Made by a program: the position numbers and the translations under genes. A stretch of DNA of 64,000 nucleotides, taken from IMG/VR virus record IMGVR_UViG_3300045970_000794, positions 248,001-312,000 of that record; one strand, given 5' to 3'. This document shows positions 31,134 through 45,484 of this stretch, piece after piece. Below the pieces are notes generated by a model, which ran no database searches, was not told the DNA's origin, and worked only from the letters and a program-made list of their open reading frames with translations. How positions within the stretch are numbered: position 1 is the stretch's first letter; every line of letters starts with the position of its first letter.

Positions 31134-31161
31134 TAATTTAAACTTAAATAAAAATAAAACT

Positions 31162-31962
31162 ATGCAATATTTTAAAAGAAGATTCAAAACAAAGCGATTT
31201 ATAGTACTTATCGCATTAACTACTGGGTTAATTGTATTCCTATCGCTTACATCATCAGCACAGGAAGCTAAATTCCCAATCAAAGCTGATTCAACTATCG
31301 TTGATACAGTTAAAAAAGAATGCCTAAAACCAAGCTTATTCGGTAGCGGTATGCTTGTTAGTCAACACGTTTGGCGTGGAGTTTTACTCGATAGTAAACC
31401 AAATATTCAACCAAATATCGGTGTTGGTATCGGTGGTTTTGAATTTGGTGCATTTGGAACCGTTAGTTTCTTTAATGACTATTCTGAAGTAGATGTTTAT
31501 GCATCATATACTTATAAATCATTTAAGTTAATGGTAACAGATTTCTACATTGATTTAGGTGGTTCATCAAAGTCTCAAGATTATTTCGACTATTCTGATA
31601 CTGCTGGATATCATCACGTAATGTGTGATTTAATATTTATCGGTAGTGAAGCGATACCAGTTAGAGTTACTGCGTCAACTATGTTACATAGTGGATGGGA
31701 TGTAGACTCTCTAAATAAACCTAAATTCACAACATATTTAGAAGCTAGATACTTACGTAATGATTTCGAATTCTTTGTTGGTGGGATAACTGGTCAAAGT
31801 GATTTCTACCTTAACAAAAACAATGGATTTAATATAATTAATGTGGGTGCCGCATACAATTATCATTTAAGATTCAATGAAATTGAGATTCCATTATCCA
31901 CTCAATTGTGTGTTAATCCTCAATTGCAGAAAGCTTACCTAACTTTTTTAGTAATTTTTTAA
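31162..31962 (+). CDS. Outer-membrane beta-barrel (TorF/TIGR02001-like putative porin)
   Basis: Signal peptide, SQHVWRG..QP..G..FGAFG, EVDVYASY, terminal Phe. Confidence 0.6.
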   Translation: MQYFKRRFKTKRFIVLIALTTGLIVFLSLTSSAQEAKFPIKADSTIVDTVKKECLKPSLFGSGMLVSQHVWRGVLLDSKPNIQPNIGVGIGGFEFGAFGTVSFFNDYSEVDVYASYTYKSFKLMVTDFYIDLGGSSKSQDYFDYSDTAGYHHVMCDLIFIGSEAIPVRVTASTMLHSGWDVDSLNKPKFTTYLEARYLRNDFEFFVGGITGQSDFYLNKNNGFNIINVGAAYNYHLRFNEIEIPLSTQLCVNPQLQKAYLTFLVIF

Positions 31963-31980
31963 AAAAAAAGTGTTAAAAGA

Positions 31981-32012
31981 TTTGGAGAATAGAAATATTC
32001 TCCGTATCTTTG
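31981..32012 (+). promoter_or_regulatory. Promoter with a GAAA hairpin in its spacer
   Basis: TTTG-GAGAATA GAAA TATTCTCC-G-TATCTTTG. Confidence 0.75.
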
Positions 32013-32065
32013 CACTTCAGAATTAAACTAAAATGTTTTTTATTAACAATTAAAATTTTAAAACT

Positions 32066-33595
32066 ATGAGTAACACAATGTTAACAGTTAAAAAACCAGG
32101 TGGTATTACAACCCGTGGTAAAATCGTAATCGCAACTTTATTTGTTGGATTACTTGCAATCCTTTATTTCTCGTTCAGAGATAAAATTACTAAATTCGCT
32201 GGTGGTGCAACTAGTGGTGATGTGATTAAAATTGGCGTTGTTACATGGCCAGGTTATATCGGCGGTGAATACATGAACAACGGTTTTGCACCAAATATGG
32301 AATGCCGTTTCTATAAAGAATATGGTATTCAAGTTGAATTTAAAGTTCTTAACGATTTCTTAGCATCTAGAAAAGCTTTCGAATCTGGTGAAGTTGACCT
32401 TTTATGGTGTACTGCCGATGCTTTCCCAACTGAAATGGGTAGAGAAGGTACAATGGCTTTAAGTAATCCTAAATTCCTTTTCCAATCTGACTGGAGCCGT
32501 GGTGGTGATGCGATTGTTGTTGATATGTCTATCGATAAAATTTCTGACCTTAAAGGTAAAACTGTAGCTGTTGCTGAAGGAACTCCTAGTCACTCATTCC
32601 TTATTAACTTACTTAAAGCTAATAACATGACATTATCCGATATTGATGTGAAATCAGTACCAAGTGCTGTTGACGCTGCCGATGTTTTTAAACAAGGTGC
32701 ATGTGTAGCCTCAGTTGTATGGTCACCAGATGATATCGATTGTCTTAAAAAAGTTTCTGGTTCTAAAGTTTTAGCCTCTACTAAAGAAGCAACATATATT
32801 ATTGCCGATGGTTTTATTGCTAAAGACGAATATATTAAAAAGAACATTGAAAAATTACAAAAGCTTTACGATGGTTGGATGGTCGGTGCTGCTGAAATTA
32901 ATGCAAATAAAGATGGTGCTAGAAATAAAGCCGCAAAAATATTAGCCGATAATTTCCAAATGACTGAAAAAGATGCGTTAGCTTCACTTGATAACGTTAG
33001 ATTAGCCAATCACGGTGATAATAAAAATTTCTTCGGTCTTGGTGAATCAAATTGCGTAACTGGTGATATGTTATACACTACTATGTCTGGTGAATATCAA
33101 AAAATTAAAAAAGTTGAAAATCCTTTAATGTGGAGAGAAGTATCTGACGCAGTATTAGTTAAAGCATCAACCTTAACTGGTAACGGCCAATTAGCTGAAG
33201 TTAGTAAGAAATTTACCCCAGCTGGTTCAGATGTTAAAGAACGTAAAGCTTATTCTACTAAGAAAGTAACTATCAACTTCCCAAGTGGTTCTTATGCATT
33301 AACTGGTGAAGCTAAAGCTAAAATCAATAGAGAATACTCTGAAATTGCTAAAACCAATGGTGGTGCTAGAATTAGAGTAGAAGGAAATACTGATAACTCA
33401 GGTAATCCTAACTTTAACCAAACACTTTCTTATAATAGAGCTAAAGCTGTTGCAGAATATTTAACAAATCAATTTGGATTTGACTTCAATAGGTTCATTG
33501 TAATTGGAAATGGTTCTAAGCATGCAATAGATGCTGGTTCAAAAGGTGATGATGAAAATTATAGAACTACAGATTTCGGATTAATAAAAGAGTAA
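32066..33595 (+). CDS. ABC substrate-binding protein (SsuA/NMT1-like) fused to an OmpA-like C-terminal domain
   Basis: TWPGYIG, QSDWSRGGDAIV, DLKGKTVAV; IRVEGNTD..N..LS..RAKAV..YL. Confidence 0.85.
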   Translation: MSNTMLTVKKPGGITTRGKIVIATLFVGLLAILYFSFRDKITKFAGGATSGDVIKIGVVTWPGYIGGEYMNNGFAPNMECRFYKEYGIQVEFKVLNDFLASRKAFESGEVDLLWCTADAFPTEMGREGTMALSNPKFLFQSDWSRGGDAIVVDMSIDKISDLKGKTVAVAEGTPSHSFLINLLKANNMTLSDIDVKSVPSAVDAADVFKQGACVASVVWSPDDIDCLKKVSGSKVLASTKEATYIIADGFIAKDEYIKKNIEKLQKLYDGWMVGAAEINANKDGARNKAAKILADNFQMTEKDALASLDNVRLANHGDNKNFFGLGESNCVTGDMLYTTMSGEYQKIKKVENPLMWREVSDAVLVKASTLTGNGQLAEVSKKFTPAGSDVKERKAYSTKKVTINFPSGSYALTGEAKAKINREYSEIAKTNGGARIRVEGNTDNSGNPNFNQTLSYNRAKAVAEYLTNQFGFDFNRFIVIGNGSKHAIDAGSKGDDENYRTTDFGLIKE

Positions 33596-33612
33596 CAATC
33601 ATTAACTAAATG

Positions 33613-33642
33613 AAAAAGCACCTAAAATTTTGGGTGCTTTTT
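33613..33642 (+). terminator. Intra-operon hairpin/terminator
   Basis: AAAAAGCACC..GGTGCTTTTT between the binding-protein and permease genes. Confidence 0.65.
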
Positions 33643-33656
33643 TTAAAAACTTTAAT

Positions 33657-34619
33657 ATGGAAACATTCAAATCCCTTTTTAAATTAGGTGGAACAATCTC
33701 TAATAGATTATCTACCATTGTTGGAGTCTTAGGATTCGTATTCTTAATGGCTGTTTGGTATATTATTACCAGTGCAACTGGTTGGGTTAAACCTCAAACA
33801 ATTCCAAGCCCAAATAGTGTTCTATTCGCTTTTGTTGAAATGTTTTCAAAAGACCAGTTTTTACTTATGGTCTGGAAACCGTTATTGCTTTTAATTGGTA
33901 TTATTATTACATTATATTTCATACCATTCACAAAATTTTTAGTTAATTACGCCATTAGTGCTCTATTAATTTTATTCGCAATTTACCTTTTGATGGGTAA
34001 TTTCATAATGAAAGATGCACCAATTTCAATGAATATCTTATATTCACTACAACTAAATGTCGCTGGATATCTTAAAGCAATATTAATATCGATACCAATC
34101 GGATTCTTAATCGCATTATTCCCTTTACTAAGAAGTATGTTCAGTAAATATATCGATGCAATTAGATATGTTCCATTAACTGGTCTTATCGGTGTGTTCA
34201 TCGCATGGTTCGGAATCGCTTCTGGTATGAAAATTAATTTCCTAGCTTTTGGTATCATCGTATACCTATTACCTATCGTTGTTCAACGTGTTTATGAAAC
34301 TGAAAAAATTCACTTAGATACTATATTCACACTAGGTGCTAATAGCTGGCAAACGTTCCGTAAAATATACTGGCCATCCGTTATTTCTAAACTAATAACT
34401 GATATTAGAGTTATCACTGCAATATCTTGGACCTATATAATCGTAGCTGAAATGGCTAACAATGAAGGCGGTCTTGGTGGATTTGTATATACTTGCGCTA
34501 GACAAAGTAGATTGGATAAAATATTTGCTGTAATCCTTATTATCGTTATAATTGGATTCTTACAAGACATTCTATTCAAATGGTTAGATAAAAAAATTAA
34601 TAAATTTAAATACGTATAA
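33657..34619 (+). CDS. ABC transporter permease (NitT/TauT-like)
   Basis: Multiple TM segments; EAA-like TLGANSWQTFRKIYWP; SWTYIIVAE..GLG. Confidence 0.9.
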   Translation: METFKSLFKLGGTISNRLSTIVGVLGFVFLMAVWYIITSATGWVKPQTIPSPNSVLFAFVEMFSKDQFLLMVWKPLLLLIGIIITLYFIPFTKFLVNYAISALLILFAIYLLMGNFIMKDAPISMNILYSLQLNVAGYLKAILISIPIGFLIALFPLLRSMFSKYIDAIRYVPLTGLIGVFIAWFGIASGMKINFLAFGIIVYLLPIVVQRVYETEKIHLDTIFTLGANSWQTFRKIYWPSVISKLITDIRVITAISWTYIIVAEMANNEGGLGGFVYTCARQSRLDKIFAVILIIVIIGFLQDILFKWLDKKINKFKYV

Positions 34620-34621
34620 TC

Positions 34622-35530
34622 ATGGGTTATTTCGATTCAAAAAAAGATACTAAAGTAATTAGTGATATCGTTAGAGGTACTAGCGAAGAACCAACCGTTA
34701 AAGCCAAAACAATTAAATTTGATGAGTCAAAATATGACCCAATTGATAAAATTCAATTGAAGAATATCAATCAAGTTTATACTGATAAAAATGGTAATAA
34801 AAATGTTGTATTCAATGACTTTGACCTTGATATTAAAGATATTAAAGGTGGTGGTCAGTTCACAGTTATTGTCGGTGCCAGCGGTTGTGGTAAATCTACA
34901 TTGCTAAGATATATTGCTGGTCTTCAAAAACCAACATCTGGTGAAATATACCTTAATGGTAATCTAAGAACTAATAATGATAGAGTTGGTATGGTTTTCC
35001 AACAATACTCTTCAATGACATGGGCTACAGTACTTGAAAATGTTGCATTACCATTGCAGTTAAAAGGTGTTTCTAAAGCTGAAAGAGAAGAACAAGCTAT
35101 GGAAATGATTAAAATCGTTAACCTTGAAGGTCATGAAAATAAATTCGCACAATATCCAATCCTTAGTGGTGGTCAATTACAACGTGTAGCTATTGCTAGA
35201 AGCTTAATGGCTAATAGTGAAATGCTATTACTTGATGAACCATTCGGTGCCTTAGATATTAATACTAGATTGAGAATGCAAGATATGCTAATCGATATCT
35301 GGTCCAAAGTTAAAGGTGACCCAACATTCATTTTTGTTACCCACGATTTATCCGAAGCGGTTTATCTTGCTGATGAGATTTATGTGTTAAAGGCTAACCC
35401 AGGTGAAGTGTGTGAATTCATCGAAATTGATATCCCGATGAAAAGAACTTCAGCAATCAAAAGGACTCCAAAATTTATGGAATATGTTCACCACCTTGAA
35501 GATTTAATGATGAAGATTAATATCAAATAA
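34622..35530 (+). CDS. ABC transporter ATP-binding protein (NitT/TauT-like)
   Basis: GASGCGKST, LSGGQLQR, LLLDEPFGALD, VTHD. Confidence 0.95.
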   Translation: MGYFDSKKDTKVISDIVRGTSEEPTVKAKTIKFDESKYDPIDKIQLKNINQVYTDKNGNKNVVFNDFDLDIKDIKGGGQFTVIVGASGCGKSTLLRYIAGLQKPTSGEIYLNGNLRTNNDRVGMVFQQYSSMTWATVLENVALPLQLKGVSKAEREEQAMEMIKIVNLEGHENKFAQYPILSGGQLQRVAIARSLMANSEMLLLDEPFGALDINTRLRMQDMLIDIWSKVKGDPTFIFVTHDLSEAVYLADEIYVLKANPGEVCEFIEIDIPMKRTSAIKRTPKFMEYVHHLEDLMMKINIK

Positions 35531-35532
35531 TA

Positions 35533-36012
35533 ATGAATTTTAGAAGTAAACAAAATTTTAATTATTATGGTATTTTTAGATACATTAAAGCTGGGTCTCG
35601 ATTGCCACGTAAAATTAAAAAATGTGTATTAGGGTATAGAATGAGTAAAACGCAAATTAAAAAACATTATAATAATAGCGTTTTATTCGTTCACCAATAC
35701 CAATCTTCGACCTCATTAAGTGTTGATGTTATTTGCCCAGAATGTGGTTGTTATTGGACTATAACTGAAAATCATGGTGCCGAATATCCAGAAGTATATA
35801 TTACTGAATATTGCGCTAGATGCCACTGTTTGATTGGTAGTGCCGATAATTCACCAACATACCTTTTCTATGAATGTGATGATAATGAGTTCGTTAACAA
35901 ACATAAAATTAGAACCATTTTTATGATAAATCGTGAGAGATATGAGGGTAAATTAAAAGAAAAAGAACGCTCAATGAATAAAAATAACACCGATTTCTGT
36001 GACTTTTTTTAA
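35533..36012 (+). CDS. Hypothetical protein with CxxC pairs
   Basis: CPECGC and CARC. Confidence 0.6.
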   Translation: MNFRSKQNFNYYGIFRYIKAGSRLPRKIKKCVLGYRMSKTQIKKHYNNSVLFVHQYQSSTSLSVDVICPECGCYWTITENHGAEYPEVYITEYCARCHCLIGSADNSPTYLFYECDDNEFVNKHKIRTIFMINRERYEGKLKEKERSMNKNNTDFCDFF

Positions 36013-36026
36013 AATAGACGATTAAT

Positions 36027-36521
36027 ATGGCAATGAAACTAGATAAACCTATTGTAGTTGAATCAACTACATTGGTTAATAAACAAAATGTAATGGTTTG
36101 CTTACAAACTGACCAAACGATTAGACTTAAACTAAAATCAGCTGATTCAAAAGTGTTAACTATTAGTGTTGAAGATTTATATAAATTCCTTCAAACTAAA
36201 GATAATCCAATACCAATTAAAAAAGTTGAAGTAACACCATCAGTACCAGAAACTAAAATCAATAAATCTAATTTAGAAGTTAGAGACTGTAATGATAATG
36301 AACCATTATTCAATATGCAAGATTTTAGAAGTGCTTATATGATTCTTCCAATACCTTACGATGTTAAGGTCAAACTTGAAGCTAAAACATCAGAGTTATT
36401 AGGATTATATAAACGTAAAAAATCAGATAAAACTGAATCCACTGAGAAAAATAGTGTTCAAGTTGGTGTATCCGCTTCCGAAAGTACTACAACCGAAAAA
36501 AAGAAACGGAAAAAATCATAA
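36027..36521 (+). CDS. Hypothetical protein
   Basis: 164 aa ORF. Confidence 0.65.
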   Translation: MAMKLDKPIVVESTTLVNKQNVMVCLQTDQTIRLKLKSADSKVLTISVEDLYKFLQTKDNPIPIKKVEVTPSVPETKINKSNLEVRDCNDNEPLFNMQDFRSAYMILPIPYDVKVKLEAKTSELLGLYKRKKSDKTESTEKNSVQVGVSASESTTTEKKKRKKS

Positions 36522-36971
36522 TTCATAAACTTTAAAGTATTCTTTAAACTTACGTCTGGGGATGAGGTAGCCAACTGTATTGCTGTCTTTATCCCCAGAA
36601 TTAGTTACCTTCCGAAAATTATTATCATCAATAAGCTTACGTAAATCATTACTTAAAATATACCATATTTGTTTTCTAAAAGGTAAATAAAATACATACC
36701 AATCAGCTTTCGTTACACTTAAACCAGATGCCTTACCCCTACACTCAACTTCAACAAATAAATTACCATTATCAAACCCAGCTCTGCAATATTCATCAGT
36801 CTTTATTTCATACGTTTTATCAATGCCAGACTTTTTAACCATGAAATCAAATTTATTATCATTATTAACATCAACTAACGTTCCATTAGTCATACTTAAT
36901 ACATGCTCTAATACTACTTTCTCACCATCTTGCCCTGTGATTATATCCCTATTGAAATTATACTGTCCCAT
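36516..36971 (-). CDS. PD-(D/E)XK nuclease-like protein
   Basis: FDF..YEIKTD..GNLFVE..SGL..TKADW. Confidence 0.65.
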   Translation of the reverse strand: MGQYNFNRDIITGQDGEKVVLEHVLSMTNGTLVDVNNDNKFDFMVKKSGIDKTYEIKTDEYCRAGFDNGNLFVEVECRGKASGLSVTKADWYVFYLPFRKQIWYILSNDLRKLIDDNNFRKVTNSGDKDSNTVGYLIPRRKFKEYFKVYEL

Positions 36972-37041
36972 ACCTTTATTTTTATCTAATGATACGCATT
37001 TTTATTCAAATAGTCAAATATTTATCATTAAATAAACTATT

Positions 37042-37551
37042 ATGCAACGAATTAAACTAACAGAAAAACAAGCTTGTTTAGTACAAGAAATCATTAAAGA
37101 AGCCGAATCATTCGAAAATAATGATAATGAAACTAGATTCAATACTCTATTTAAAGGTTATACTAATATTATTAAAAAATATGTTAATGAAATCAACGTA
37201 TTATATAATAAAGTAAGCGTTGAACCAGTGGATTTAACACCAGAAGAATTACTAGATATCTTTAATAAATGTCATGGGATTATTAAAGCATCACATAATA
37301 TTGGAATGAAGTTCGAATATAGTCTTAAAACACTATCCGATGAAGAATTTAGTCAATTTGGTGATGATTTAGATATTGAAATGGATAATATTAGAATGCT
37401 TTTATCACATAAAGCTGATGTGGTATTAGATTTTGTTAATCTTTACGATAAAGCTAAAGATAATCCAGAAGAATTCGATGCAAAACTAGTTCATCTAAAT
37501 AGTTTAGGTGAAAAATATTTCTCAGATATCAAAACAATTAATATTGATTAA
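37042..37551 (+). CDS. Hypothetical protein
   Basis: 169 aa; ATATTTAT upstream. Confidence 0.6.
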   Translation: MQRIKLTEKQACLVQEIIKEAESFENNDNETRFNTLFKGYTNIIKKYVNEINVLYNKVSVEPVDLTPEELLDIFNKCHGIIKASHNIGMKFEYSLKTLSDEEFSQFGDDLDIEMDNIRMLLSHKADVVLDFVNLYDKAKDNPEEFDAKLVHLNSLGEKYFSDIKTINID

Positions 37552-37591
37552 AATAATCAATAAAATTCTTGCATATTAAATTTATTTATCT

Positions 37592-37599
37592 TATCTTTG
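37592..37599 (+). promoter_or_regulatory. Bacteroidota -7 box
   Basis: TATCTTTG before the YqeY gene. Confidence 0.6.
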
Positions 37600-37622
37600 C
37601 ACCATAATTTAAAAATTGTTTT

Positions 37623-38030
37623 ATGGGAAATCTTAAAAATACCATCATTGGCGATAGAGATATGGCTATGAAAATGCATGATGCAGCCTTAACCAGCGTT
37701 CTTAGAACACTTATTGGTGAACTTGACCGAGTAGATAAAAATCCATCCGATGATGTTGTACTTAAAACAATCTCAAAAATAGTTGATGCTAACATTGAAT
37801 TCAATATGAATGAATTCGAAACAGCTATCCTATCCCAATACCTTCCAAAAAAATTAAGTGAACTTGAAATTACTACTATAGTTAAACATCAAATCACTAC
37901 CAACCAATATACTGGTATGAAAGATATGGGTAAAATAATGAAATTCTTCCAAGATAACTACCCTAGTCAATATGATGGTAAATTAGTTAGTAACATTATT
38001 AAAACAGAACTCCTAATCCCCGCCAATTAA
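37623..38030 (+). CDS. GatB/YqeY domain protein
   Basis: E..IL..YLPKKLS, KDMGKIMK, DGKLVS. Confidence 0.85.
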   Translation: MGNLKNTIIGDRDMAMKMHDAALTSVLRTLIGELDRVDKNPSDDVVLKTISKIVDANIEFNMNEFETAILSQYLPKKLSELEITTIVKHQITTNQYTGMKDMGKIMKFFQDNYPSQYDGKLVSNIIKTELLIPAN

Positions 38031-38071
38031 ATGGAGGGGCTGGGGTGGTTTTTAATTTAGCTACCAAACAC

Positions 38072-39262
38072 ATGGAATATAAAGAATTAGCATCATACGG
38101 CGATGAAAGTGTTACGAAACTATTAGATATGTATCGAAATGATAAATATAATACTAGAGTCGTATACTATAATAGTCGTGAAAAAGCAATCAAATGTAGA
38201 TTAGCCGCTTTCATTAAAGAAGATAATACATTTGAATTAGCTATATTCAAAAAAACTTGGGGTATATCCAAAATTAATGTGATTTATAGTCGAGAAGTTA
38301 AAGAAATGTCAATATTTAAATCCAAAAAAGGATATTATACCGTTAAAGGTAAATTGATTAAACCATTAATTCTTAATGATATTTGGCTAAGTAGATTCTC
38401 AAAAGAAATATTGTTATTCATTAAAGATTATATACCTTTCATTGAACTACAAGTTAAACATAATCTACTTGTTCATAAATCATTTAACTATATCATTGAA
38501 CATAAATTAACTTCATTAAAGAGAATGACCATATTTGAGTATGGTATTCCTTATTCTAGAATTAAGAAACTAATGGAAAGACCATCATTCTATGACTCAT
38601 TACCCGATTTTAAAAGAGTGCTTTATTATAATAAAGAGTATATTACCAAACTAGAAAATATTAATCTGGAAATCTTTGATAAACAACATCATTTTCATAT
38701 ATTCAGCGATGCTGCCAAAATGGCCCGATGTCTTAATGTTAAAATCAATGCATCATGGTCAATTAAAAGACTTAAAGAAGAACATGATAATTTAGCGGTT
38801 ACATTAACCGAAATAGTATTCACAGCCGATAATCGAGAATTATCTATTAGTAAAGTATATAGAGACTTCTCAATATTCGCCAACTATCGACTATTACAAA
38901 CAACTAAAGAATTAGCACTAGAAAGCCAAAAACAAAAACATTGCATAGTGACTTATTCTAACAAAGTTAATATGCATGCTTGCGGTATCTATCACATTGA
39001 TGGATATACCCTAGAATTAATAATTAGCTCAAATAAATTAGTCATTAACCAATTCAGAGGATATGGCAATGATGATGCACCCGATGAATTAAAACAATCA
39101 GTTCAACTTAAATTGGATGAATATCACCAAAAACTTAATGGTGAAAATAAAAAAATTAATGACACAATTAATATCTTTAGTAGTGACTTTGATAATCTTG
39201 AACAAGTTCAACAAATTAATATGGTTAACCTTGCTAATGATGATATATTAAATATTTTTTAA
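38072..39262 (+). CDS. PcfJ-like domain protein
   Basis: ELALES..QKHCI.TY, TLEL, QFRGYGN. Confidence 0.65.
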   Translation: MEYKELASYGDESVTKLLDMYRNDKYNTRVVYYNSREKAIKCRLAAFIKEDNTFELAIFKKTWGISKINVIYSREVKEMSIFKSKKGYYTVKGKLIKPLILNDIWLSRFSKEILLFIKDYIPFIELQVKHNLLVHKSFNYIIEHKLTSLKRMTIFEYGIPYSRIKKLMERPSFYDSLPDFKRVLYYNKEYITKLENINLEIFDKQHHFHIFSDAAKMARCLNVKINASWSIKRLKEEHDNLAVTLTEIVFTADNRELSISKVYRDFSIFANYRLLQTTKELALESQKQKHCIVTYSNKVNMHACGIYHIDGYTLELIISSNKLVINQFRGYGNDDAPDELKQSVQLKLDEYHQKLNGENKKINDTINIFSSDFDNLEQVQQINMVNLANDDILNIF

Positions 39263-39281
39263 ACTATAAACATAAAAACAA

Positions 39282-39644
39282 ATGAAAAATTTACTCTGGA
39301 GAAAAAAAGGTCAAAGACTTTATCTTACTGAAAAAGCTGAAGAAGTTAAAGTATTAGCACCAGATGTTGTTGAAATTACTAACTTCAAAAAAGATGCTGA
39401 GGGAAATTCAATTAATGTTATTGATAAAGTATACATATTAAAAGTTGAAGAAGCTCGTAGCTACCATTATAACTACAAATTCAATAAAAATGATGACGAT
39501 GCAATCAACATCCATAACACAAATATGTTGGCCGAATCAGTTGAAGCTATACCATCAAAATATAAAATAATAAACCCAACAGCTAAATTAACTATTGAAG
39601 AACCTTCTTTCAATATCAGCGAAAATTTAACTAAAAGCAATTAA
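39282..39644 (+). CDS. Hypothetical protein
   Basis: 120 aa ORF. Confidence 0.6.
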   Translation: MKNLLWRKKGQRLYLTEKAEEVKVLAPDVVEITNFKKDAEGNSINVIDKVYILKVEEARSYHYNYKFNKNDDDAINIHNTNMLAESVEAIPSKYKIINPTAKLTIEEPSFNISENLTKSN

Positions 39645-39679
39645 TTCTAACAATAACAATTAATAAAAACAACAAAATT

Positions 39680-39961
39680 ATGCCAAACGTAAGAGAAGAT
39701 TATTACGAAACAAATTCCATTGCCTCTGGTAGAGCAAGCTATAGCTGCGAATGCTGCGGTGGTACAATTAAAAAAGGTGACCCATCTGATGTCCATAAAT
39801 TCTACCCAGAATTCGATTCACGCAGAACTCACCCTAAATGTTCCAAAAAATTCTTAGATGGATTTTATTGCCCAGAATGCGGGCAATGGTGCGAAAAACT
39901 TATAGAACATAATGGCGGCGAATTCTGTCAAGAATGCTTTGATGAAGTATCAAAATATTAA
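39680..39961 (+). CDS. Zinc-finger-like protein
   Basis: CECC, HxxC, CPEC, CQEC. Confidence 0.65.
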   Translation: MPNVREDYYETNSIASGRASYSCECCGGTIKKGDPSDVHKFYPEFDSRRTHPKCSKKFLDGFYCPECGQWCEKLIEHNGGEFCQECFDEVSKY

Positions 39962-39963
39962 TT

Positions 39964-40320
39964 ATGAGCGGAGGACGATATACCAAAAAAATACCACCAT
40001 ACGTTTATTTCGTTGGTGAAGATGGTAATTGGATTCAAGGCCCCTATGTTAATCCCCCTAAACGTGATGACTATCGGAAATTTAAGGTTTTCGAAATATC
40101 ATCACATATGGGGGTTGAGATAGTTAAAGCCGATGACCAATTTATTGACCTAGTGTTTAACTCAATCATAACTAAACTGGAAACAGAGGATAAACTTATC
40201 ACCGAAGCTATCGGTGATATAATCGTAATAGCTAAATTGAATGATTACGAAACAGCAATAGAATTAATTAAAAAACAATTTATTGTTATTGATAAACAAG
40301 ATATACACAATGGAAAATAA
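39964..40320 (+). CDS. Hypothetical protein
   Basis: 118 aa ORF. Confidence 0.6.
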   Translation: MSGGRYTKKIPPYVYFVGEDGNWIQGPYVNPPKRDDYRKFKVFEISSHMGVEIVKADDQFIDLVFNSIITKLETEDKLITEAIGDIIVIAKLNDYETAIELIKKQFIVIDKQDIHNGK

Positions 40321-40510
40321 CGAAATACTCAAAACTTCAGATGTGTGGCAAAAAGAATACCCACATATCACAGTTCTCGACTCAGATGGTTGGGATAGGA
40401 AAAATTATCAATACTCTTGGTTCGAAGAAAAAATAACCTATGCGGAATATACTAATAGACTAATGATGTCAACTTGTATGGGATTTAACCCAGAAATGAA
40501 ACAGCAATAA
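40310..40510 (+). CDS. Hypothetical protein
   Basis: ATG 40310; DSDGWDR motif. Confidence 0.6.
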   Translation: MENNEILKTSDVWQKEYPHITVLDSDGWDRKNYQYSWFEEKITYAEYTNRLMMSTCMGFNPEMKQQ

Positions 40511-40654
40511 TCCCCATGAGGAAAATTTTCCCAAAAAAATTTTTTGTCATCCAGAAAAAATAAAAAAATAGGGTCGATATATAGGCAAAAACACTATACC
40601 CCAAAATTTCTAAAAAAATTTTTCCGAGGGTCCGACCCCCAACCTTACGGGCGT

Positions 40655-40712
40655 GGGAGGGGGGGTGTAAAAGGGGGGATACGGGAGGTAGGGGTAACGG
40701 AGGGGAGGGGGG
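40655..40712 (+). other. G-run tract with G-quadruplex potential
   Basis: GGG-A-G7-TGTAAAA-G6-ATAC-GGG-AGGTA-G4-TAACGGA-G4-A-G6. Confidence 0.8.
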
Positions 40713-40783
40713 TATATTTATTTTTAATATACTCTTTACTTTTTAATTTTTATTAGTATTTATAATATATAAATTAATATATT

Positions 40784-41401
40784 ATGGAGAATAAGATAAA
40801 GAAAAAATTAAAGAGAAGAGGAAATAAATTATATCAAACATATTTTTTTAATCCTGACAATATCATCAATGAAATTATCAATCAAATTGATAATAATGAA
40901 ATAATTAATGAAAATAATTGTGAAACTGTTTTTAATATTAGTGATAAAAATATTCCATTAGTATATGAATTGATTTCTTATTATCCTAAAAAGTTAAAAG
41001 AATTAAAATATATAAATGATGAAACGATAAATGAATTGTATAAAGTATATGGTGAAACTATATCAATAATAAAAGAGAATAGAGATGGTCGAACAAATGT
41101 ACGTGGTAAAATAACTAATAGTGCATTGTCACGAGCAAAGTTATATAATTTACCATGTGATATTATAAGTGAAGATATTATTTTAGTACGGACTTGTAAA
41201 TATTTAAACATACCAATTCAATACGGAAATTCATCATCAGCAAATAATTCACCTTCAATAGATAAAATAAATCCAAATTTAGGTTATGTAAAAGGTAATA
41301 TTGAAATAATATCAATGTTAGCTAACAATATGAAGAGTTCAGCAACTATTGAAGAGTTATTAACTTTTTCAAAGAACGTATTAAAAATTTATCAAAGATA
41401 A
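40784..41401 (+). CDS. HNH-like (His-Me finger) endonuclease
   Basis: C..L..P...SPSIDKINPNLGYVKGNI.IIS..AN.MKS. Confidence 0.7.
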   Translation: MENKIKKKLKRRGNKLYQTYFFNPDNIINEIINQIDNNEIINENNCETVFNISDKNIPLVYELISYYPKKLKELKYINDETINELYKVYGETISIIKENRDGRTNVRGKITNSALSRAKLYNLPCDIISEDIILVRTCKYLNIPIQYGNSSSANNSPSIDKINPNLGYVKGNIEIISMLANNMKSSATIEELLTFSKNVLKIYQR

Positions 41402-41475
41402 AAAGCTAAAAATATAATAATTATTGCAAATAGACTTAATAACAGTTTAAGGTTAAATTTTTCAATATTATTCAT
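41392..41475 (-). CDS. 27-aa hydrophobic peptide (not in ORF track)
   Basis: MNNIEKFNLKLLLSLFAIIIIFLAFYL directly behind promoter module P1. Confidence 0.4.
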   Translation of the reverse strand: MNNIEKFNLKLLLSLFAIIIIFLAFYL

Positions 41476-41489
41476 GATAATAATTTTTA

Positions 41490-41560
41490 ATTAATATGTT
41501 ACAAAGGTAATAAAAATAAAGTTACCAAACAAATTATTCAGTAACTTTATTTAATATATT
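41490..41560 (-). promoter_or_regulatory. Module P1 (with inverted repeat)
   Basis: -7 box TACCTTTG 41509-41502. Confidence 0.7.
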
Positions 41561-41563
41561 AAT

Positions 41564-41908
41564 TTAAGCAATCATTGATTTTCGTTTAACTAATCTACTT
41601 TCAACCACATCGAATGCTTTAGTTTTATGAACGTCTTCGCTAACTTCATCGATAGAAAGGATAGCAATTAAAGATTTTTTAACTAGAGGACTTTCAACCA
41701 CATCAAATGCTTTAGTACTTTGTTTATCGGCACTACATTCATCGATAGAAAGGATAGCCACATCGATATTGGTGCTGGGATTAATCGAAGGCAAAGCGGT
41801 ATCGTAGCTGAATGATACGAAAGTATCATCATTAGATGTTTGTACTTGTGCATTAGCACAGAAAGTTAGAGTAAATAAGCAAATTGCGAACATGATTAAG
41901 TTTTTCAT
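41564..41908 (-). CDS. Secreted protein with two 31-aa internal repeats
   Basis: Signal peptide; AILSIDE..TKAFDVVES twice (93-bp period, 41597-41758). Confidence 0.65.
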   Translation of the reverse strand: MKNLIMFAICLFTLTFCANAQVQTSNDDTFVSFSYDTALPSINPSTNIDVAILSIDECSADKQSTKAFDVVESPLVKKSLIAILSIDEVSEDVHKTKAFDVVESRLVKRKSMIA

Positions 41909-41920
41909 AATTTTAAAATT

Positions 41921-41988
41921 TTAGGTTAATAATATAATACAAAGGTAAATAAAATAAATGAGAAAAACAAATATTATTTAATATATTT
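41921..41988 (-). promoter_or_regulatory. Module P2
   Basis: -7 box 41947-41940. Confidence 0.8.
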
Positions 41989-42312
41989 TGCTAAATAATT
42001 ACGATAATTTTGTCTATATTTTTTATAGTATTGTTTTTTAATAATATTAAGATTATAACCAATGGATTCCAATTCATTTTTTAAATCATTATATTCGGTT
42101 TCAGTAGCTAATTTGGATATTGAAACGCAATGCAAATACATTGCTTCAGAGTGTTGTCCGTTATGCATATATGATAATATATTACCACGACTTGATTCTA
42201 TTTCATAAGGGAATAAAGCAATAATATCACCTTCTTTAAATTTTCTGAAAATTACATCAGTTTTATTAATATCTTTTTTAAACGGGAATAAAGTAATATT
42301 ATCTTTTTTCAT
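41974..42312 (-). CDS. Hypothetical phage protein
   Basis: VIFRKF..IIALFP..SY.H.GQHS; follows P3. Confidence 0.7.
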   Translation of the reverse strand: MKKDNITLFPFKKDINKTDVIFRKFKEGDIIALFPYEIESSRGNILSYMHNGQHSEAMYLHCVSISKLATETEYNDLKNELESIGYNLNIIKKQYYKKYRQNYRNYLAKYIK

Positions 42313-42324
42313 GGTGTTTTGGTT

Positions 42325-42394
42325 TTAGTATTGATTAATATAATGCAAAGGTAATATAAATAATTGAGAAAAACAAATATTATTTAATATATTT
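42325..42394 (-). promoter_or_regulatory. Module P3
   Basis: -7 box 42353-42346. Confidence 0.85.
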
Positions 42395-42589
42395 TTAAAT
42401 ATAATATTTATCAGCTGTAAATTGTTTATCAAAAACGACCATACTATTTGATTTTGAAGGGTATTTATTAACTAAATTAATAGCTTCATCACGTGTTAAG
42501 CCTCTTCTTATTATTTCACGTCTTCTTGAAACTCTGAACACTTTATATACTTTATAAGTTCCAATGTATTTTTTTTCAATTGTTTTCAT
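42395..42589 (-). CDS. Hypothetical protein
   Basis: 64 aa; follows P4. Confidence 0.65.
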   Translation of the reverse strand: MKTIEKKYIGTYKVYKVFRVSRRREIIRRGLTRDEAINLVNKYPSKSNSMVVFDKQFTADKYYI

Positions 42590-42600
42590 AGTGGTTTGTT

Positions 42601-42670
42601 TTAGTATTGATTAATATAAGACAAAGGTAATATAAATAATTGACAAAAACAAATATTATTTAATATATTT
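42601..42670 (-). promoter_or_regulatory. Module P4
   Basis: -7 box 42629-42622. Confidence 0.85.
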
Positions 42671-42730
42671 TTATTTTTATTTTATATTGCTTGGTATCAT
42701 TGTATTATAGAGAAAAGATGAAAATAAATT

Positions 42731-42800
42731 GAAAATAATTGCATTTTTATTTGGTAGATTAAAATAATTGTTGTAGATTTGCAATATCAAATTAATCAAT
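42731..42800 (+). promoter_or_regulatory. Module P5 (class B upstream element)
   Basis: -7 box TAGATTTG 42774-42781. Confidence 0.75.
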
Positions 42801-42822
42801 TTAACCACTAAAACATATTATT

Positions 42823-43395
42823 ATGAAAAACGTAGAAATTCAAATTATCGCTTCTGACAATGCAACTAGAGTTATTAACACTTTAAAAAATGCAGTTAGA
42901 AAATCACCTACAGGCGTTTCAATGATTAGCATTAGAAATTATACTAATAGTTACAATGAAATTAGTAACTCACGTATTAACATTGGTGCAAGTTACGAGA
43001 ATGCAAAACAAAAAGATATTAACTTTTTGAAAGCCCTTGACATCACTACATTAGAGAATAGAAAATCTGACGTTGTTACTTTAGAAATGGCAAGAATTGA
43101 ATTAATCAAATCTTTTGAAACACCCGATAAAAATCGTTCTAATGGTCAAATCGATGCTTATACTCATATTGTAAGCGGTTTAAAAGTACATAATGAAACT
43201 TCTAGGGTATATATTTATGGTTTGAGAGTAGCAAAGGAAGTTATTGTAAAAGGTGAATATCCAGTAGTGAATAGCAAACCACTTACTATTGCAAAAAATG
43301 AATTGAGAAAATTGTTAAAAACTAATGAATTTGTAAATTTTGCAATTGATATGACTGAAAGTATTCGTGCAAATGGTGAAGAGTTAACATTCTAA
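42823..43395 (+). CDS. Hypothetical protein
   Basis: 190 aa with own promoter and terminator. Confidence 0.75.
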   Translation: MKNVEIQIIASDNATRVINTLKNAVRKSPTGVSMISIRNYTNSYNEISNSRINIGASYENAKQKDINFLKALDITTLENRKSDVVTLEMARIELIKSFETPDKNRSNGQIDAYTHIVSGLKVHNETSRVYIYGLRVAKEVIVKGEYPVVNSKPLTIAKNELRKLLKTNEFVNFAIDMTESIRANGEELTF

Positions 43396-43412
43396 GCTAA
43401 TCAACTAAAATT

Positions 43413-43444
43413 AAAAGGGGTGAATTTATTCACTCCTTTTTTTT
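43413..43444 (+). terminator. Intrinsic terminator
   Basis: AAAAGGGGTGAA-TTTA-TTCACTCCTTTT plus T run. Confidence 0.8.
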
Positions 43445-43603
43445 GTTCTTATAAATTTAAGCTATTAATTAAATAGGTAATAATATAAATTAGGCTTCAT
43501 TAGATAAGCTATAAACGACTTTAATAATGTTTTAATATTTGGATATAGTTTGGATATTGGAGTGCCTTAAATCGCTTTAAAATGCTTAATGAAAATAATT
43601 ATA

Positions 43604-43669
43604 AAATATATTAAATAATATTTGGAATTATAGATTTTAATTTGTACCTTTGCATTATATTAACCAATA
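43604..43669 (+). promoter_or_regulatory. Module P6
   Basis: -7 box TACCTTTG 43645-43652. Confidence 0.85.
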
Positions 43670-43682
43670 AACCTTTTATATT

Positions 43683-43958
43683 ATGGAAACTACATTGAAT
43701 ATGAATGAACACAAATTTTATGTCTTAACTGATGATACTGGTAAAATAGTTGCTATCATTAGGACTGAAAGTATTCCACCATTTTGGAATAAGATTGAAC
43801 AAGCTATTAGAGAAGACCTTTGTTTAGAAAAGGATGTTAAAGTTAAATTAGTATCTAGTATTAGTCAGAATGAGAATACAACTATTTTCATTGATATTGA
43901 ATTTGGTGGTGGTATATGGGTTGGTAGTTATGAGTTAACGCAAACGGCGGTATATTAA
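43683..43958 (+). CDS. Hypothetical protein
   Basis: 91 aa with own promoter and terminator. Confidence 0.65.
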   Translation: METTLNMNEHKFYVLTDDTGKIVAIIRTESIPPFWNKIEQAIREDLCLEKDVKVKLVSSISQNENTTIFIDIEFGGGIWVGSYELTQTAVY

Positions 43959-43964
43959 ACAAAG

Positions 43965-43988
43965 AAACCCAGTAGAGATACTGGGTTT
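43965..43988 (+). terminator. Intrinsic terminator
   Basis: AAACCCAGTA-GAGA-TACTGGGTTT plus T run. Confidence 0.85.
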
Positions 43989-44028
43989 TTTTTTGGTATG
44001 ATACACAATTTAAAAGATACACAATTTA

Positions 44029-44042
44029 TACACAAATGTGTA
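44029..44042. promoter_or_regulatory. TACAC-N4-GTGTA palindrome 1
   Basis: TACACAAATGTGTA, preceded by two ATACACAATTT half-sites. Confidence 0.6.
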
Positions 44043-44099
44043 CTTTCTGAAAAATATTAGTATTTATTAGTAAATAATATATTATTAATATTTTAATTT

Positions 44100-44738
44100 A
44101 TGCCATATAAAGATAAAGATAAAGAAAAACAATACCAAAAGGAATACAGAGAAAAGAATAAAGAATATTTCGAAGAATATCGAAAAATACATAAATATAA
44201 AAATAATAAATCGTATCAGGAATATAGTGAAAATAATAAAGAATCGTCCAAAAAATATTATAAAACTAAGGATAAAATTGTATTACAAAAAAAAGAATAT
44301 TATGAAAATAATAAAGAAAAATTAAAGCAATCTCAAAAGGAATGGCGAGAAAATAATAAAGATTATACGAATAAAATTGCTCGTAATAAATATAAAACAG
44401 ACCCATTATTTAAACTTAAACGAAGTATAAGGCGTATAATTGCTTTCAGTCTTAAAAATAAAGGACTCAAAAAAACCAGTAGAGCACACCTTATTTTAGG
44501 CTGTTCTTTTAATGATTTTAAAACTCATATTGAATCGAAATTTGAATATTGGATGACTTGGGATAACTATGGTTTATATAACGGTACGTTAAATTATGGA
44601 TGGGATATTGACCACATTATACCATTAGCAACGGCAATAAATGAAGATGAAGTGATTAGATTAAATCATTATACTAATTTGCGACCATTATGTAGTCATA
44701 TTAATCGGGTAATAAAACGTAATAAAATTGTGTATTAG
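44100..44738 (+). CDS. HNH homing-endonuclease-like protein (paralog of 4761-5363)
   Basis: GLYNGT.NYGWDIDHII.LATA..E.....LNHYTNL.PLCS.IN shared with 4761. Confidence 0.75.
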   Translation: MPYKDKDKEKQYQKEYREKNKEYFEEYRKIHKYKNNKSYQEYSENNKESSKKYYKTKDKIVLQKKEYYENNKEKLKQSQKEWRENNKDYTNKIARNKYKTDPLFKLKRSIRRIIAFSLKNKGLKKTSRAHLILGCSFNDFKTHIESKFEYWMTWDNYGLYNGTLNYGWDIDHIIPLATAINEDEVIRLNHYTNLRPLCSHINRVIKRNKIVY

Positions 44739-44944
44739 GTATAGCGTTTACTAACTTCCTCCACGTATTTAATAACCATTTGAGAATGTTCTGTGGCTTT
44801 TTTCACGTAGTCGACATTAGGGTAATAGATTTTTCTATTAGGGTAGTTTTTCTTAACGAATTCAATAAGTTCCATAAGAACATCATTAGTATTATCGAGA
44901 GCGGTAAGAATGAGTTCACGTTCATCTATTTCTAATTGATTCAT
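44735..44944 (-). CDS. Hypothetical protein
   Basis: 69 aa; follows P7. Confidence 0.6.
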   Translation of the reverse strand: MNQLEIDERELILTALDNTNDVLMELIEFVKKNYPNRKIYYPNVDYVKKATEHSQMVIKYVEEVSKRYT

Positions 44945-44954
44945 AAGATTATTG

Positions 44955-45000
44955 GTTAAAGGTTAATGCAAAGATAAGGATAATATTTCTATTATCCAAA
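44955..45000 (-). promoter_or_regulatory. Module P7 with GAAA hairpin spacer
   Basis: TTTG-GATAATA GAAA TATTATCC-T-TATCTTTG. Confidence 0.75.
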
Positions 45001-45011
45001 TTTTTTTGCAT

Positions 45012-45404
45012 TTATTTTAATTGGTTATAAAAAATACCTTTTTCAGCATTTTCAAGGTCTTTACCAGTTGCTCCACGAAACCAAGCATCCCAATAAGTTC
45101 TTTGACAACTAGAATCCATTAAACGACCAATAATGATTTCTCTAATGTTTTCTTTATATGCTTGCATATCGCTTAATAAGTGGTCTGCAATGTCTTCATT
45201 TGATAACATAATATTTTTTACTGTAACATCTTTATTTAGTTTTAAAAATGTTTCCTCATACTTAGCTTTAGCTTCTTCTAATGTTTTAGCATCCACAATA
45301 CACCATTCTTCGGAGTTAAAAGAAGCTTCTTCAACTGTATTGTACTGTGTTAATGTTTCACACTTACAATCATCATCAATATCATATCCTAATATAAATT
45401 TCAT
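45012..45404 (-). CDS. Hypothetical protein
   Basis: ATG 45404 (MKFILG); the track start is a promoter TTG. Confidence 0.6.
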   Translation of the reverse strand: MKFILGYDIDDDCKCETLTQYNTVEEASFNSEEWCIVDAKTLEEAKAKYEETFLKLNKDVTVKNIMLSNEDIADHLLSDMQAYKENIREIIIGRLMDSSCQRTYWDAWFRGATGKDLENAEKGIFYNQLK

Positions 45405-45414
45405 AGCAGTAAGT

Positions 45415-45484
45415 TTTAATTGGTTAATACTTTGCAAAGATACTACAAATAATCCACATTACCAAATATTATTTAATATATTTT
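45415..45484 (-). promoter_or_regulatory. Module P8
   Basis: -7 box 45442-45435. Confidence 0.85.

Follow-up and report, generated by a model that had tools for sequence, protein, structure and literature searches.

A terminator-like hairpin predicted inside the promoter spacer of a class of Bacteroidota-phage promoters

The closest described counterparts of the element considered here are the PeSL (promoter-early stem-loop) cassettes of T4-like phages (Arbiol et al. 2010, PMC2839356; Comeau et al. 2014, PMC4122927). These short composite units join a promoter for the host primary sigma factor to a stem-loop, are repeated many times between small ORFs of early or hyperplastic regions, and show evidence of recombination within the cassettes. 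The PeSL stem-loop was shown to terminate upstream transcription and lies next to the promoter, beside an AT-rich region and the -35 box. Three other systems also invite comparison. Intrinsic (Rho-independent) terminators consist of an A-tract, a hairpin, and a U-tract. The intercistronic RNase III processing hairpins of the T7 early region are imperfect hairpins of about 20 bp in early polycistronic RNA that define and protect 3' ends; they have a characteristic internal loop and are not promoters. The N4 virion RNAP recognizes promoters as extruded DNA hairpins with a 5–7-bp stem and a 3-nt loop, and these promoters lack -35/-10 boxes.

We analyzed a 64,000-nt window (positions 248,001–312,000) of the 362,102-bp pond phage genome IMGVR_UViG_3300045970_000794. 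A preliminary description had reported that two promoters 13 kb apart in this window share a GAAA-loop hairpin spacer with a compensatory base change, and this observation is confirmed. Site A is TTTGGAGAATAGAAATATTCTCCGTATCTTTG at 31981–32012(+), and site B is TTTGGATAATAGAAATATTATCCTTATCTTTG at 45000–44969(−). The two 32-mers differ at positions 7 (G/T), 20 (C/A), and 24 (G/T), and because positions 7 and 20 pair in the 8-bp stem, a G:C pair becomes T:A. None of 100 dinucleotide shuffles gave a match, and these are the only two copies in the whole genome, also when the stem and the inner loop bases are left free.

Both sites have the Bacteroidota sigma-A layout of a -33 TTTG and a -7 TAnnTTTG separated by about 19–21 nt, here TTTG-N20-TATCTTTG. 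In site A the -33 box is at 31981–31984 and the -7 box at 32005–32012; in site B they are at 45000–44997 and 44976–44969. The consensus position of the -7 box (-12 to -5) is taken from PMC9723704. TTTG-N18-21-TAnnTTTG occurs 31 times in the window against 4.3 expected, a 7-fold enrichment, and on the viral contigs designated here L041 and L007 (L numbers denote contigs recovered in our scans) it occurs 24 times against 0.76 and 30 times against 1.2, each time just upstream of ORFs. The -7 box ends 53 nt before the ATG in site A and 24 nt before it in site B.

The inner hairpin fills the spacer, and its base includes the last G of the -33 box. In site A the 5' arm GGAGAATA is at 31984–31991, the GAAA loop at 31992–31995, and the 3' arm TATTCTCC at 31996–32003 (hairpin 31984–32003(+)). 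In site B the 5' arm GGATAATA is at 44997–44990, the loop at 44989–44986, and the 3' arm TATTATCC at 44985–44978 (hairpin 44978–44997(−)). A second, outer helix pairs the six bases before the -33 box with the A-n-n-T-T-T of the -7 box; in site A its 5' arm AAAGAT is at 31976–31981(+) and its 3' arm ATCTTT, inside the -7 box, at 32006–32011(+), which in RNA would be the U-rich tract after the hairpin. The full predicted fold of site A spans 31969–32016(+) and adds a third, outermost helix, AGTGT/GCACT, which rests on folding alone; its predicted RNA energy is -21.2 kcal/mol (z -8.1). The full predicted fold of site B spans 44965–45012(−), with outer arms AATGCAAA and TTTGCATT and an RNA energy of -15.3 kcal/mol (z -4.7). 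The usual G at -5 is A in site B, giving an A·C mismatch with the C of the -7 box. Two non-hairpin promoters of the same phage fold at only -1.6 and -3.0 kcal/mol. No Rfam family was matched at the gathering threshold anywhere in the window.

Hundreds of sites of the same design occur in other viral contigs. More than 119 viral loci match TTTGG-N6-GAAA-N6-CCTTATCTTTG, and a further 68 loci carry other -7 boxes. The loop is GAAA in nearly all copies, with one GGAA and one AAAA. Counts here were made with alignment and pair-count tools or by eye on alignments. The preliminary description had named absence of covariation in other copies, together with wild-type behavior of stem mutants, as grounds for rejecting its proposal, and covariation is clearly present. 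On 126 related sites the covariation score is 0.379 against 0.159 shuffled (0/500). On 51 distinct near-perfect hairpins, 98.3% of cells pair against 68.5% shuffled and the score is 0.771 against 0.188 (0/500), whereas sliding the partner gives at most 0.148. The compensatory change is therefore not an accident of two sequences.

The outer helix covaries as well. A G at -5 is present in 24 of 26 TTATCTTTG hairpin promoters but in about 2 of 16 non-hairpin promoters with the same -7 box. The -5/+5 pair is G·C in the TTATCTTTG class, A·T in the TTATTTTTG class, and T·A in the TTATATTTG and TTACATTTG classes, and the -4/+4 pair becomes G·C with TTACATTTG, and with TTACCTTTG in L031 and L190. Taken alone, the outer helix gives a covariation of 0.158 against 0.088 shuffled (0/500).

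All 21 transition-type stem defects are G·T on the sense strand and none is A·C, indicating that the selected fold is single-stranded and sense. This finding argues against both a duplex operator and a symmetric cruciform. The palindrome could in principle be an operator for a dimeric repressor that co-regulates the two transcription units, as it spans 20 bp between the -33 and -7 boxes and the change between the two window copies is symmetric. However, at least 45 different stem sequences occur, several within one phage: L041 has GGAATTGT, GGAAAAGT, and GGAAAGTA, and contig 3300016474_000543 has GGAGAATA, GGAGAATT, and GGATAAGT. Across the 51 distinct arm pairs it is complementarity that is conserved, not sequence, and strand-asymmetric defects mean nothing for a duplex site, leaving the operator reading close to refuted.

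Gating of the promoter by a DNA structure, the preliminary proposal in general form, is also unlikely. In this view, the palindrome would extrude under negative supercoiling, removing the 20-bp spacer and burying the -7 box to switch the promoter off, or the fold would be bound by a structure-specific protein, such that promoter activity would depend on DNA topology or on transcription from upstream. Consistent with this possibility, the palindrome spans the whole promoter including the -7 box, the predicted DNA folds (-12.3 kcal/mol for site A and -9.7 for site B) are well below shuffles, and the hairpin keeps an exact register with the promoter boxes. That register is, however, also forced simply by fitting 8+4+8 nt into a 20-nt spacer. 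A cruciform needs both strands to fold, yet the 21 wobble defects would be A·C mismatches on the other strand. Eight-bp arms are short for extrusion, and the closing pairs are mostly A·T or T·A rather than the C·G that makes GAAA DNA mini-hairpins unusually stable.

The preliminary interpretation, a structure- or operator-gated promoter class with a parallel in N4 and a link between the transporter operon and an early gene, is only partly supported. The sites have the layout and position of promoters, the spacer hairpin is a selected structure, and the unit downstream of site A (32066–35530(+)) is indeed an ABC transporter operon. By Pfam it encodes a substrate-binding (NMT1/phosphonate-bd) plus OmpA-domain protein (32066–33595), a permease (33630–34619), and an ABC ATPase (34622–35530); PHROG 25518 was also matched in this unit. 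The N4 analogy is not supported. Both are small DNA-encoded hairpins associated with phage early transcription, but here the host-type -33/-7 boxes are intact, the stem is 8 bp, the loop is 4 nt, and selection is on the sense strand. Pfam searches of the phage detected no T7-like or beta/beta' RNAP domains, although the profile for the T7-like enzyme (PF00940) also gave no hit in any control genome and N4-like virion RNAPs are very divergent. Nothing specifically links the transporter operon to the small ORF downstream of site B (44735–44944(−), 69 aa), which has no family hit and no relatives among the viral contigs searched, so there is no evidence that the promoter travels with that gene. 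The two sites are simply this phage's two members of a class found in many phage contigs.

Site A follows a co-directional ORF (31111–31962(+), 283 aa) whose transcript would run into the hairpin and whose stop lies 18 nt before the -33 box, and site B follows one (45012–45437(−), 141 aa) whose stop lies 11 nt before it; neither ORF has a family hit. All 17 hairpin promoters examined follow a co-directional ORF, and in 16 of them the stop codon lies 1–29 nt before the -33 box, whereas 8 of about 29 non-hairpin promoters in the window sit at divergent junctions. This evidence is weak, however, because early-gene arrays are mostly co-directional anyway. The anatomy is that of an intrinsic terminator: a complementary A-rich 5' flank, a stem whose base is GG/CC in all copies, a GNRA tetraloop, and at once a U-rich flank (T-TAnnTTTG in DNA), on one strand only and right after a stop codon. 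A terminator scan flags site A, and the same hairpin core followed by plain T-runs occurs as ordinary terminators in other contigs, for example L010, L012, L014–L016, and L018.

We favor, with a probability of about 0.5, the reading that each site is a composite cassette acting at two levels. As double-stranded DNA it would be an ordinary host sigma-A promoter that starts the downstream unit about 5 nt after the -7 box, a position inferred from PMC9723704, at roughly 32017 for site A and 44964 for site B. When RNA polymerase reads through from the gene upstream, the same bases would be transcribed and fold into the GAAA-capped stem, with the A-rich arm (AAAGAU) pairing with the U-rich -7 box (UUAUCUUUG). 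The result would be an intrinsic terminator, or at least a 3'-end-forming and stabilizing hairpin, that ends the upstream transcript a few bases before the next one begins, with the -7 box doubling as U-tract. The analysis establishes the sequence anatomy, the covariation of both helices, the sense-strand specificity, the co-directional context, and the spread across phages. That the folded molecule is RNA and that the cassettes promote recombination are inferences. That the fold terminates transcription, rather than only being processed or stabilizing the 3' end, and where transcription starts are also inferred, as a search of sequencing runs returned only two DNA runs from pond metagenomes that contain the sequence. 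Termination may be partial because the U-tract is interrupted (UUAUCUUU) and the stems of the two window sites have only 2–3 G·C pairs. Such punctuation is also not generally required, as 24 of the 26 promoters with the strict consensus in this phage's gene arrays have no hairpin.

Conservation of the outer helix is not needed for termination as such and would equally fit an RNase III-type processing site or a DNA-level fold. It is possible, although we consider it unlikely, that the long imperfect hairpin in read-through RNA is cut by a double-strand-specific RNase or blocks 3' exonucleases, by analogy with the T7 early region. Sense-strand specificity, selection on the outer helices, the interrupted U-tract, and a total paired length of about 20 bp at site A, in three helices with small internal loops, are compatible with this view. 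On the other hand, the outermost helix is seen only by folding the two window sites, a GC-based stem preceded by an A-tract and directly followed by U-rich sequence is the classic terminator layout, and the same cores serve with plain T-runs elsewhere.

Compared with PeSLs, these units are likewise composite primary-sigma promoter plus stem-loop cassettes repeated between small ORFs, with up to 12 copies per 26-kb contig and arrays in L041 and L007. They differ in that the stem-loop is nested in the spacer rather than adjacent to the promoter, with the -7 box serving as U-rich tail and as 3' arm of an outer helix, and in the nearly invariant loop, the promoter grammar (TTTG/TAnnTTTG), the hosts (Bacteroidota), and the phages, which are not T4-like as far as tested. 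Unlike an ordinary intrinsic terminator, the element has the interrupted UUAnnUUUG of a -7 box as its U-tract and would at the same time be a promoter for the next gene. Literature searches found PeSL papers but nothing describing spacer-nested hairpins in Bacteroidota phage promoters, although the incomplete library searched means that this is not proof of novelty. We tentatively suggest a widespread and so far undescribed class of bifunctional signals in phages of Bacteroidota, in which one cassette of about 40 nt ends one transcript and starts the next within a few bases; a stronger version is that hairpin formation by incoming transcription directly tunes firing of the embedded promoter. 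Promoters and terminators are usually treated as separate signals, which a 2026 preprint still calls a dogma, whereas the comparative data from many uncultured phages show selection for a terminator-like fold and a promoter in the same bases. The class gives a rule for annotating transcription units in Bacteroidota phage genomes, which are mostly uncultured and include jumbo phages, offers compact, insulated expression parts for Flavobacterium and Bacteroides engineering, and extends the PeSL idea of mobile promoter-terminator cassettes beyond T4-like phages. The strand-asymmetry test (G·T against A·C) is, in addition, a cheap general way to tell RNA or single-strand folds from duplex palindromes.

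A blastn search of three cassettes against 50,697 phage records found no cultured phage with a nested hairpin. The Riemerella phage hit has a separate terminator and a plain promoter, the Flavobacterium FCL-2 hit lies in coding sequence, and the 635-kb uncultured phage LR745206 has only partial hairpins. In 596 Gb of bacterial genomes the pattern gave only 44 loci, mostly single non-hairpin Bacteroidales promoters, and it is therefore not a general host motif.

The repeated cassettes probably also act as recombination points between small ORFs, as PeSLs do, where crossovers map to the loop (PMC2839356). That they are mainly recombination modules, kept because they let small ORFs be shuffled within and between phages with the hairpin as a by-product or as a target of a recombination protein, is very unlikely, as this does not explain the compensatory changes, the tolerance of G·U only on the sense strand, or the covariation of the outer arm with the -7 box; a recombination role is compatible with, rather than an alternative to, an RNA function. 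Many copies per contig flank small ORFs. The whole 32-mer of site B recurs unchanged in L007, L011, L013, L028, and L144, and it is found on viral contigs of 28 kb to 288 kb and on a small contig of a Bacteroidales MAG. In a comparison that included no pair of near-identical genomes, chimeric hairpins carry the left arm of one family and the right arm of another, as in L041:9210 (GGAATTGT/ACTTTTCC), L113 (GGATAAGT/TATTATCC), L081, and L088.

The window lies at positions 248,001-312,000 of a complete 362,102-bp virus record with direct terminal repeats, is about 30% G+C, and was found in pond metagenomes. The preliminary description reported two promoters with a shared GAAA-loop hairpin spacer and a compensatory change, and this observation is confirmed exactly. 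The two 32-mers differ at positions 7, 20, and 24, and positions 7 and 20 are partners in an 8-bp stem (GGAGAATA/TATTCTCC against GGATAATA/TATTATCC) closed by GAAA. Both have the layout of a Bacteroidota primary-sigma promoter (TTTG, 20 nt, TAnnTTTG), a pattern that occurs 31 times in the window against 4.3 expected and almost always just upstream of an ORF. In Flavobacterium psychrophilum, the sigma-A box TAnnTTTG lies at -12 to -5 (PMC9723704), and the predicted start sites are therefore near 32017 for the plus-strand site (site A) and near 44964 for the minus-strand site (site B). These are the only two hairpin-type promoters in the genome, which has 26 promoters of the strict form TTTGG-N19-TAYCTTTG. 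More than ten promoters at window positions 41480-62050, mostly on the minus strand, share a conserved cassette of about 75 nt that extends well beyond the -33/-7 boxes (AAAAATATATTAAATAATATTTGG...TAYCTTTGCATTATATTAAYCAAT), whereas a second subclass has AAAATAATTGCATTTTTATTTGG upstream. Spacer classes such as TGTCAATTTAATT and GATTAAAATATTTTAC also recur in other phage contigs (L041 and L007).

Each of the two sites lies 11-18 nt after the stop codon of a co-directional ORF. Site A precedes genes that together encode a complete ABC importer (32066-35530, plus strand): a membrane-anchored substrate-binding protein of the NMT1/phosphonate-binding type fused to a C-terminal OmpA domain, then a permease and an ATPase. 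The fusion protein matches PHROG 25518 (unknown function) over its full length, indicating that other phages carry it too. Site B precedes a 69-aa minus-strand ORF for which no relatives were found. This ORF and a 212-aa plus-strand ORF converge (44100-44944), and their ends overlap by 4 nt. The 212-aa protein is lysine-rich and, by eye, has an HNH-like DH...N...N motif near its C terminus, although Pfam gave no hit.

The two sites belong to a large class. A scan of viral contigs for the 20-mer with the covarying pair left free found 30 loci. About 23 sites, several of them on the same contig, carry the whole promoter plus conserved flanks, and all of these have G..C or T..A at the free pair with the exception of one degenerate site (C..A) seen on two contigs. 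Freeing all six inner stem positions (TTTGG-N6-GAAA-N6-CCTTATCTTTG) gave more than 119 loci, a lower bound, with up to 12 copies on a 26-kb contig. The stems differ widely (GGAGAATT, GGATAAGT, GGAATTGT, GGAAAAGT, GGAAAGTA, GGATAATC, GGATATGT, GGTAGTTT, and others), but their arms are complementary. A scan with other -7 boxes added 68 loci and many GC-richer stems, such as GGTGGAAT, GGTGGAGT, GGGGAATT, GGCGAATA, and GGAGGATA. On all 126 sites of the first set, which include plain promoters that only share the anchors, covariation is 0.379 against 0.159 shuffled (0/500), and sliding the partner gives at most 0.144. On 51 distinct hairpins with at most one non-Watson-Crick pair, 98.3% of cells pair and covariation is 0.771 against 0.188. 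The loop is GAAA in nearly all copies of the GGA[G/T]AA family, with one GGAA and one AAAA.

The same pattern is rare in 596 Gb of bacterial genomes, where 44 loci were found, most of them single non-hairpin Bacteroidales promoters. The multi-copy cases sit on small contigs (L144, L146, L174, and L182) of one MAG of an uncultured Bacteroidales, KTt_bin-0938, which carry several hairpin promoters with the same stems as the viral contigs and are probably phage contigs binned with the host. The class is therefore phage-associated, and the hosts are Bacteroidota. In addition, two Microviridae records from pig faeces (MG945230.1:999-1068 and MG945214.1:1074-1142) hold a stretch of about 70 nt that is 74-76% similar to the cassette, next to the VP4-like gene.

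A second helix spans the promoter. Within one phage contig (L041), all seven perfect hairpin promoters read AAAAAAGATTTGG upstream, whereas non-hairpin promoters with the same -7 box read AAATAAATTTGG, AATAATTTGG, and similar. AAAGAT is the complement of the ATCTTT in TTATCTTTG, and G at -5 is present in 24 of 26 hairpin promoters with TTATCTTTG but in about 2 of 16 non-hairpin ones. When the -7 box changes, the upstream arm changes with it: TTATTTTTG goes with AAAAATTTGG (A·T), TTATATTTG with AAATATTTGG (T·A), TTACATTTG with AAATGTTTGG (G·C and T·A), and TTACCTTTG with AGGTTTGG in two unrelated cassettes, those of contigs L031 and L190. On the 69-site alignment, the -5/+5 pair is AU 22, UA 13, GU 3, and UG 1. 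For both helices together, 84% of cells pair against 70.8% shuffled, and for the outer helix alone, covariation is 0.158 against 0.088 shuffled (0/500), with slides at most 0.096. The whole fold consists of an A-rich arm, a TT/TT internal loop in which the TT of the -33 box faces the TT before the -7 box, the 8-bp stem, and GAAA. Folding of the two window sites adds a third, outermost helix (AGTGT/GCACT at site A and AATGCAAA/TTTGCATT at site B), which rests on folding alone. The predicted RNA energies are -21.2 and -15.3 kcal/mol, compared with -1.6 and -3.0 kcal/mol for two non-hairpin promoters of the same phage.

The pattern of stem defects bears on which molecule folds. The 51 hairpins were chosen by a strand-neutral rule, at most one non-Watson-Crick pair, and among them the sense strand has 21 G·U cells and 7 other mismatches, whereas the antisense strand has 0 G·U cells and 28 mismatches. 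Because a single transition in a duplex palindrome gives G·T or A·C on a given strand with equal chance, 21 to 0 is a strong asymmetry even allowing for relatedness, and the wobbles fall at six different pair positions. A duplex operator has no use for wobble pairs, and a cruciform needs both strands to fold. The selected fold is therefore single-stranded and on the sense strand, which in practice means RNA made by read-through from upstream or, less likely, the non-template DNA strand. A sequence-specific operator is also ruled out by the variety of stems within single phages.

All 17 hairpin promoters whose surroundings were listed follow a co-directional ORF, and in 16 of them the stop codon is 1-29 nt before the -33 box. 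In the window, 8 of about 29 non-hairpin promoters sit at divergent junctions. If that rate applied, 17 of 17 would have a probability of about 0.004, although this is a rough figure from one genome. On the minus strand of contig L007 (7195-7772), three identical hairpin promoters lie within 580 bp, and no minus-strand ORF of 35 aa or more lies between the copies at 7359-7390 and 7195-7226. This arrangement may represent a promoter-to-hairpin unit for a small RNA or a micro-ORF.

An A-tract, a stem with G·C pairs at its base, a GNRA loop, and a U-rich tail directly after a gene make up the layout of an intrinsic terminator. A simple terminator scan flags site A, and other contigs (L010, L012, L014-L016, and L018) use the same hairpin core with plain T-runs as ordinary terminators. 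We therefore read each cassette as a putative terminator, or at least a 3'-end-forming hairpin, for the upstream transcript, nested in the promoter of the next unit with the -7 box serving as the U-tract. That the structure is real and selected is established by the sequence comparisons, but the steps from sense single strand to RNA, and from RNA hairpin to termination, are inferences made from sequence alone. Processing or stabilization of the 3' end would fit nearly as well, and we cannot exclude a DNA-level switch. In the terminator reading, upstream RNA would end a few bases before the new start, which would insulate neighboring units and avoid occlusion of the promoter by incoming polymerase. 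Site B would stop read-through from about 17 kb of co-directional small genes before the last small ORF, the one that converges on a plus-strand gene.

The interpretation offered in the preliminary description is only partly supported, as the mechanism is probably RNA-level punctuation rather than an N4-like or operator-gated promoter. The analogy with N4 hairpin promoters fails on loop size, the presence of boxes, and strand. No Pfam-level match to multisubunit RNAP beta/beta' domains or to T7-like RNAP was found in this 362-kb phage, which fits reliance on host RNAP, although one of these searches was uninformative and divergent phage RNAPs could have been missed. No Rfam family matches, and literature searches found no description of spacer-nested hairpins in Bacteroidota phage promoters.

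The closest described system is the PeSL of T4-like phages, a repeated composite unit of a strong sigma-70 promoter and an adjacent stem-loop. The stem-loop terminates transcription in reporter assays, and the units mediate shuffling of small ORFs, with crossovers mapped in the loop (PMC2839356 and PMC4122927). The present cassettes appear to work like PeSLs in outline but depart from the PeSL geometry, because the stem-loop is inside the spacer and shares bases with both boxes, and they also belong to a different promoter grammar and host phylum. Some hairpins (L041:9210-9241, L113:8-39, L081:7687-7718, and L088:5032-5063) are chimeric, with the left arm from one stem family and the right arm from another family present in the same or related contigs, as if cassettes had recombined at the loop.
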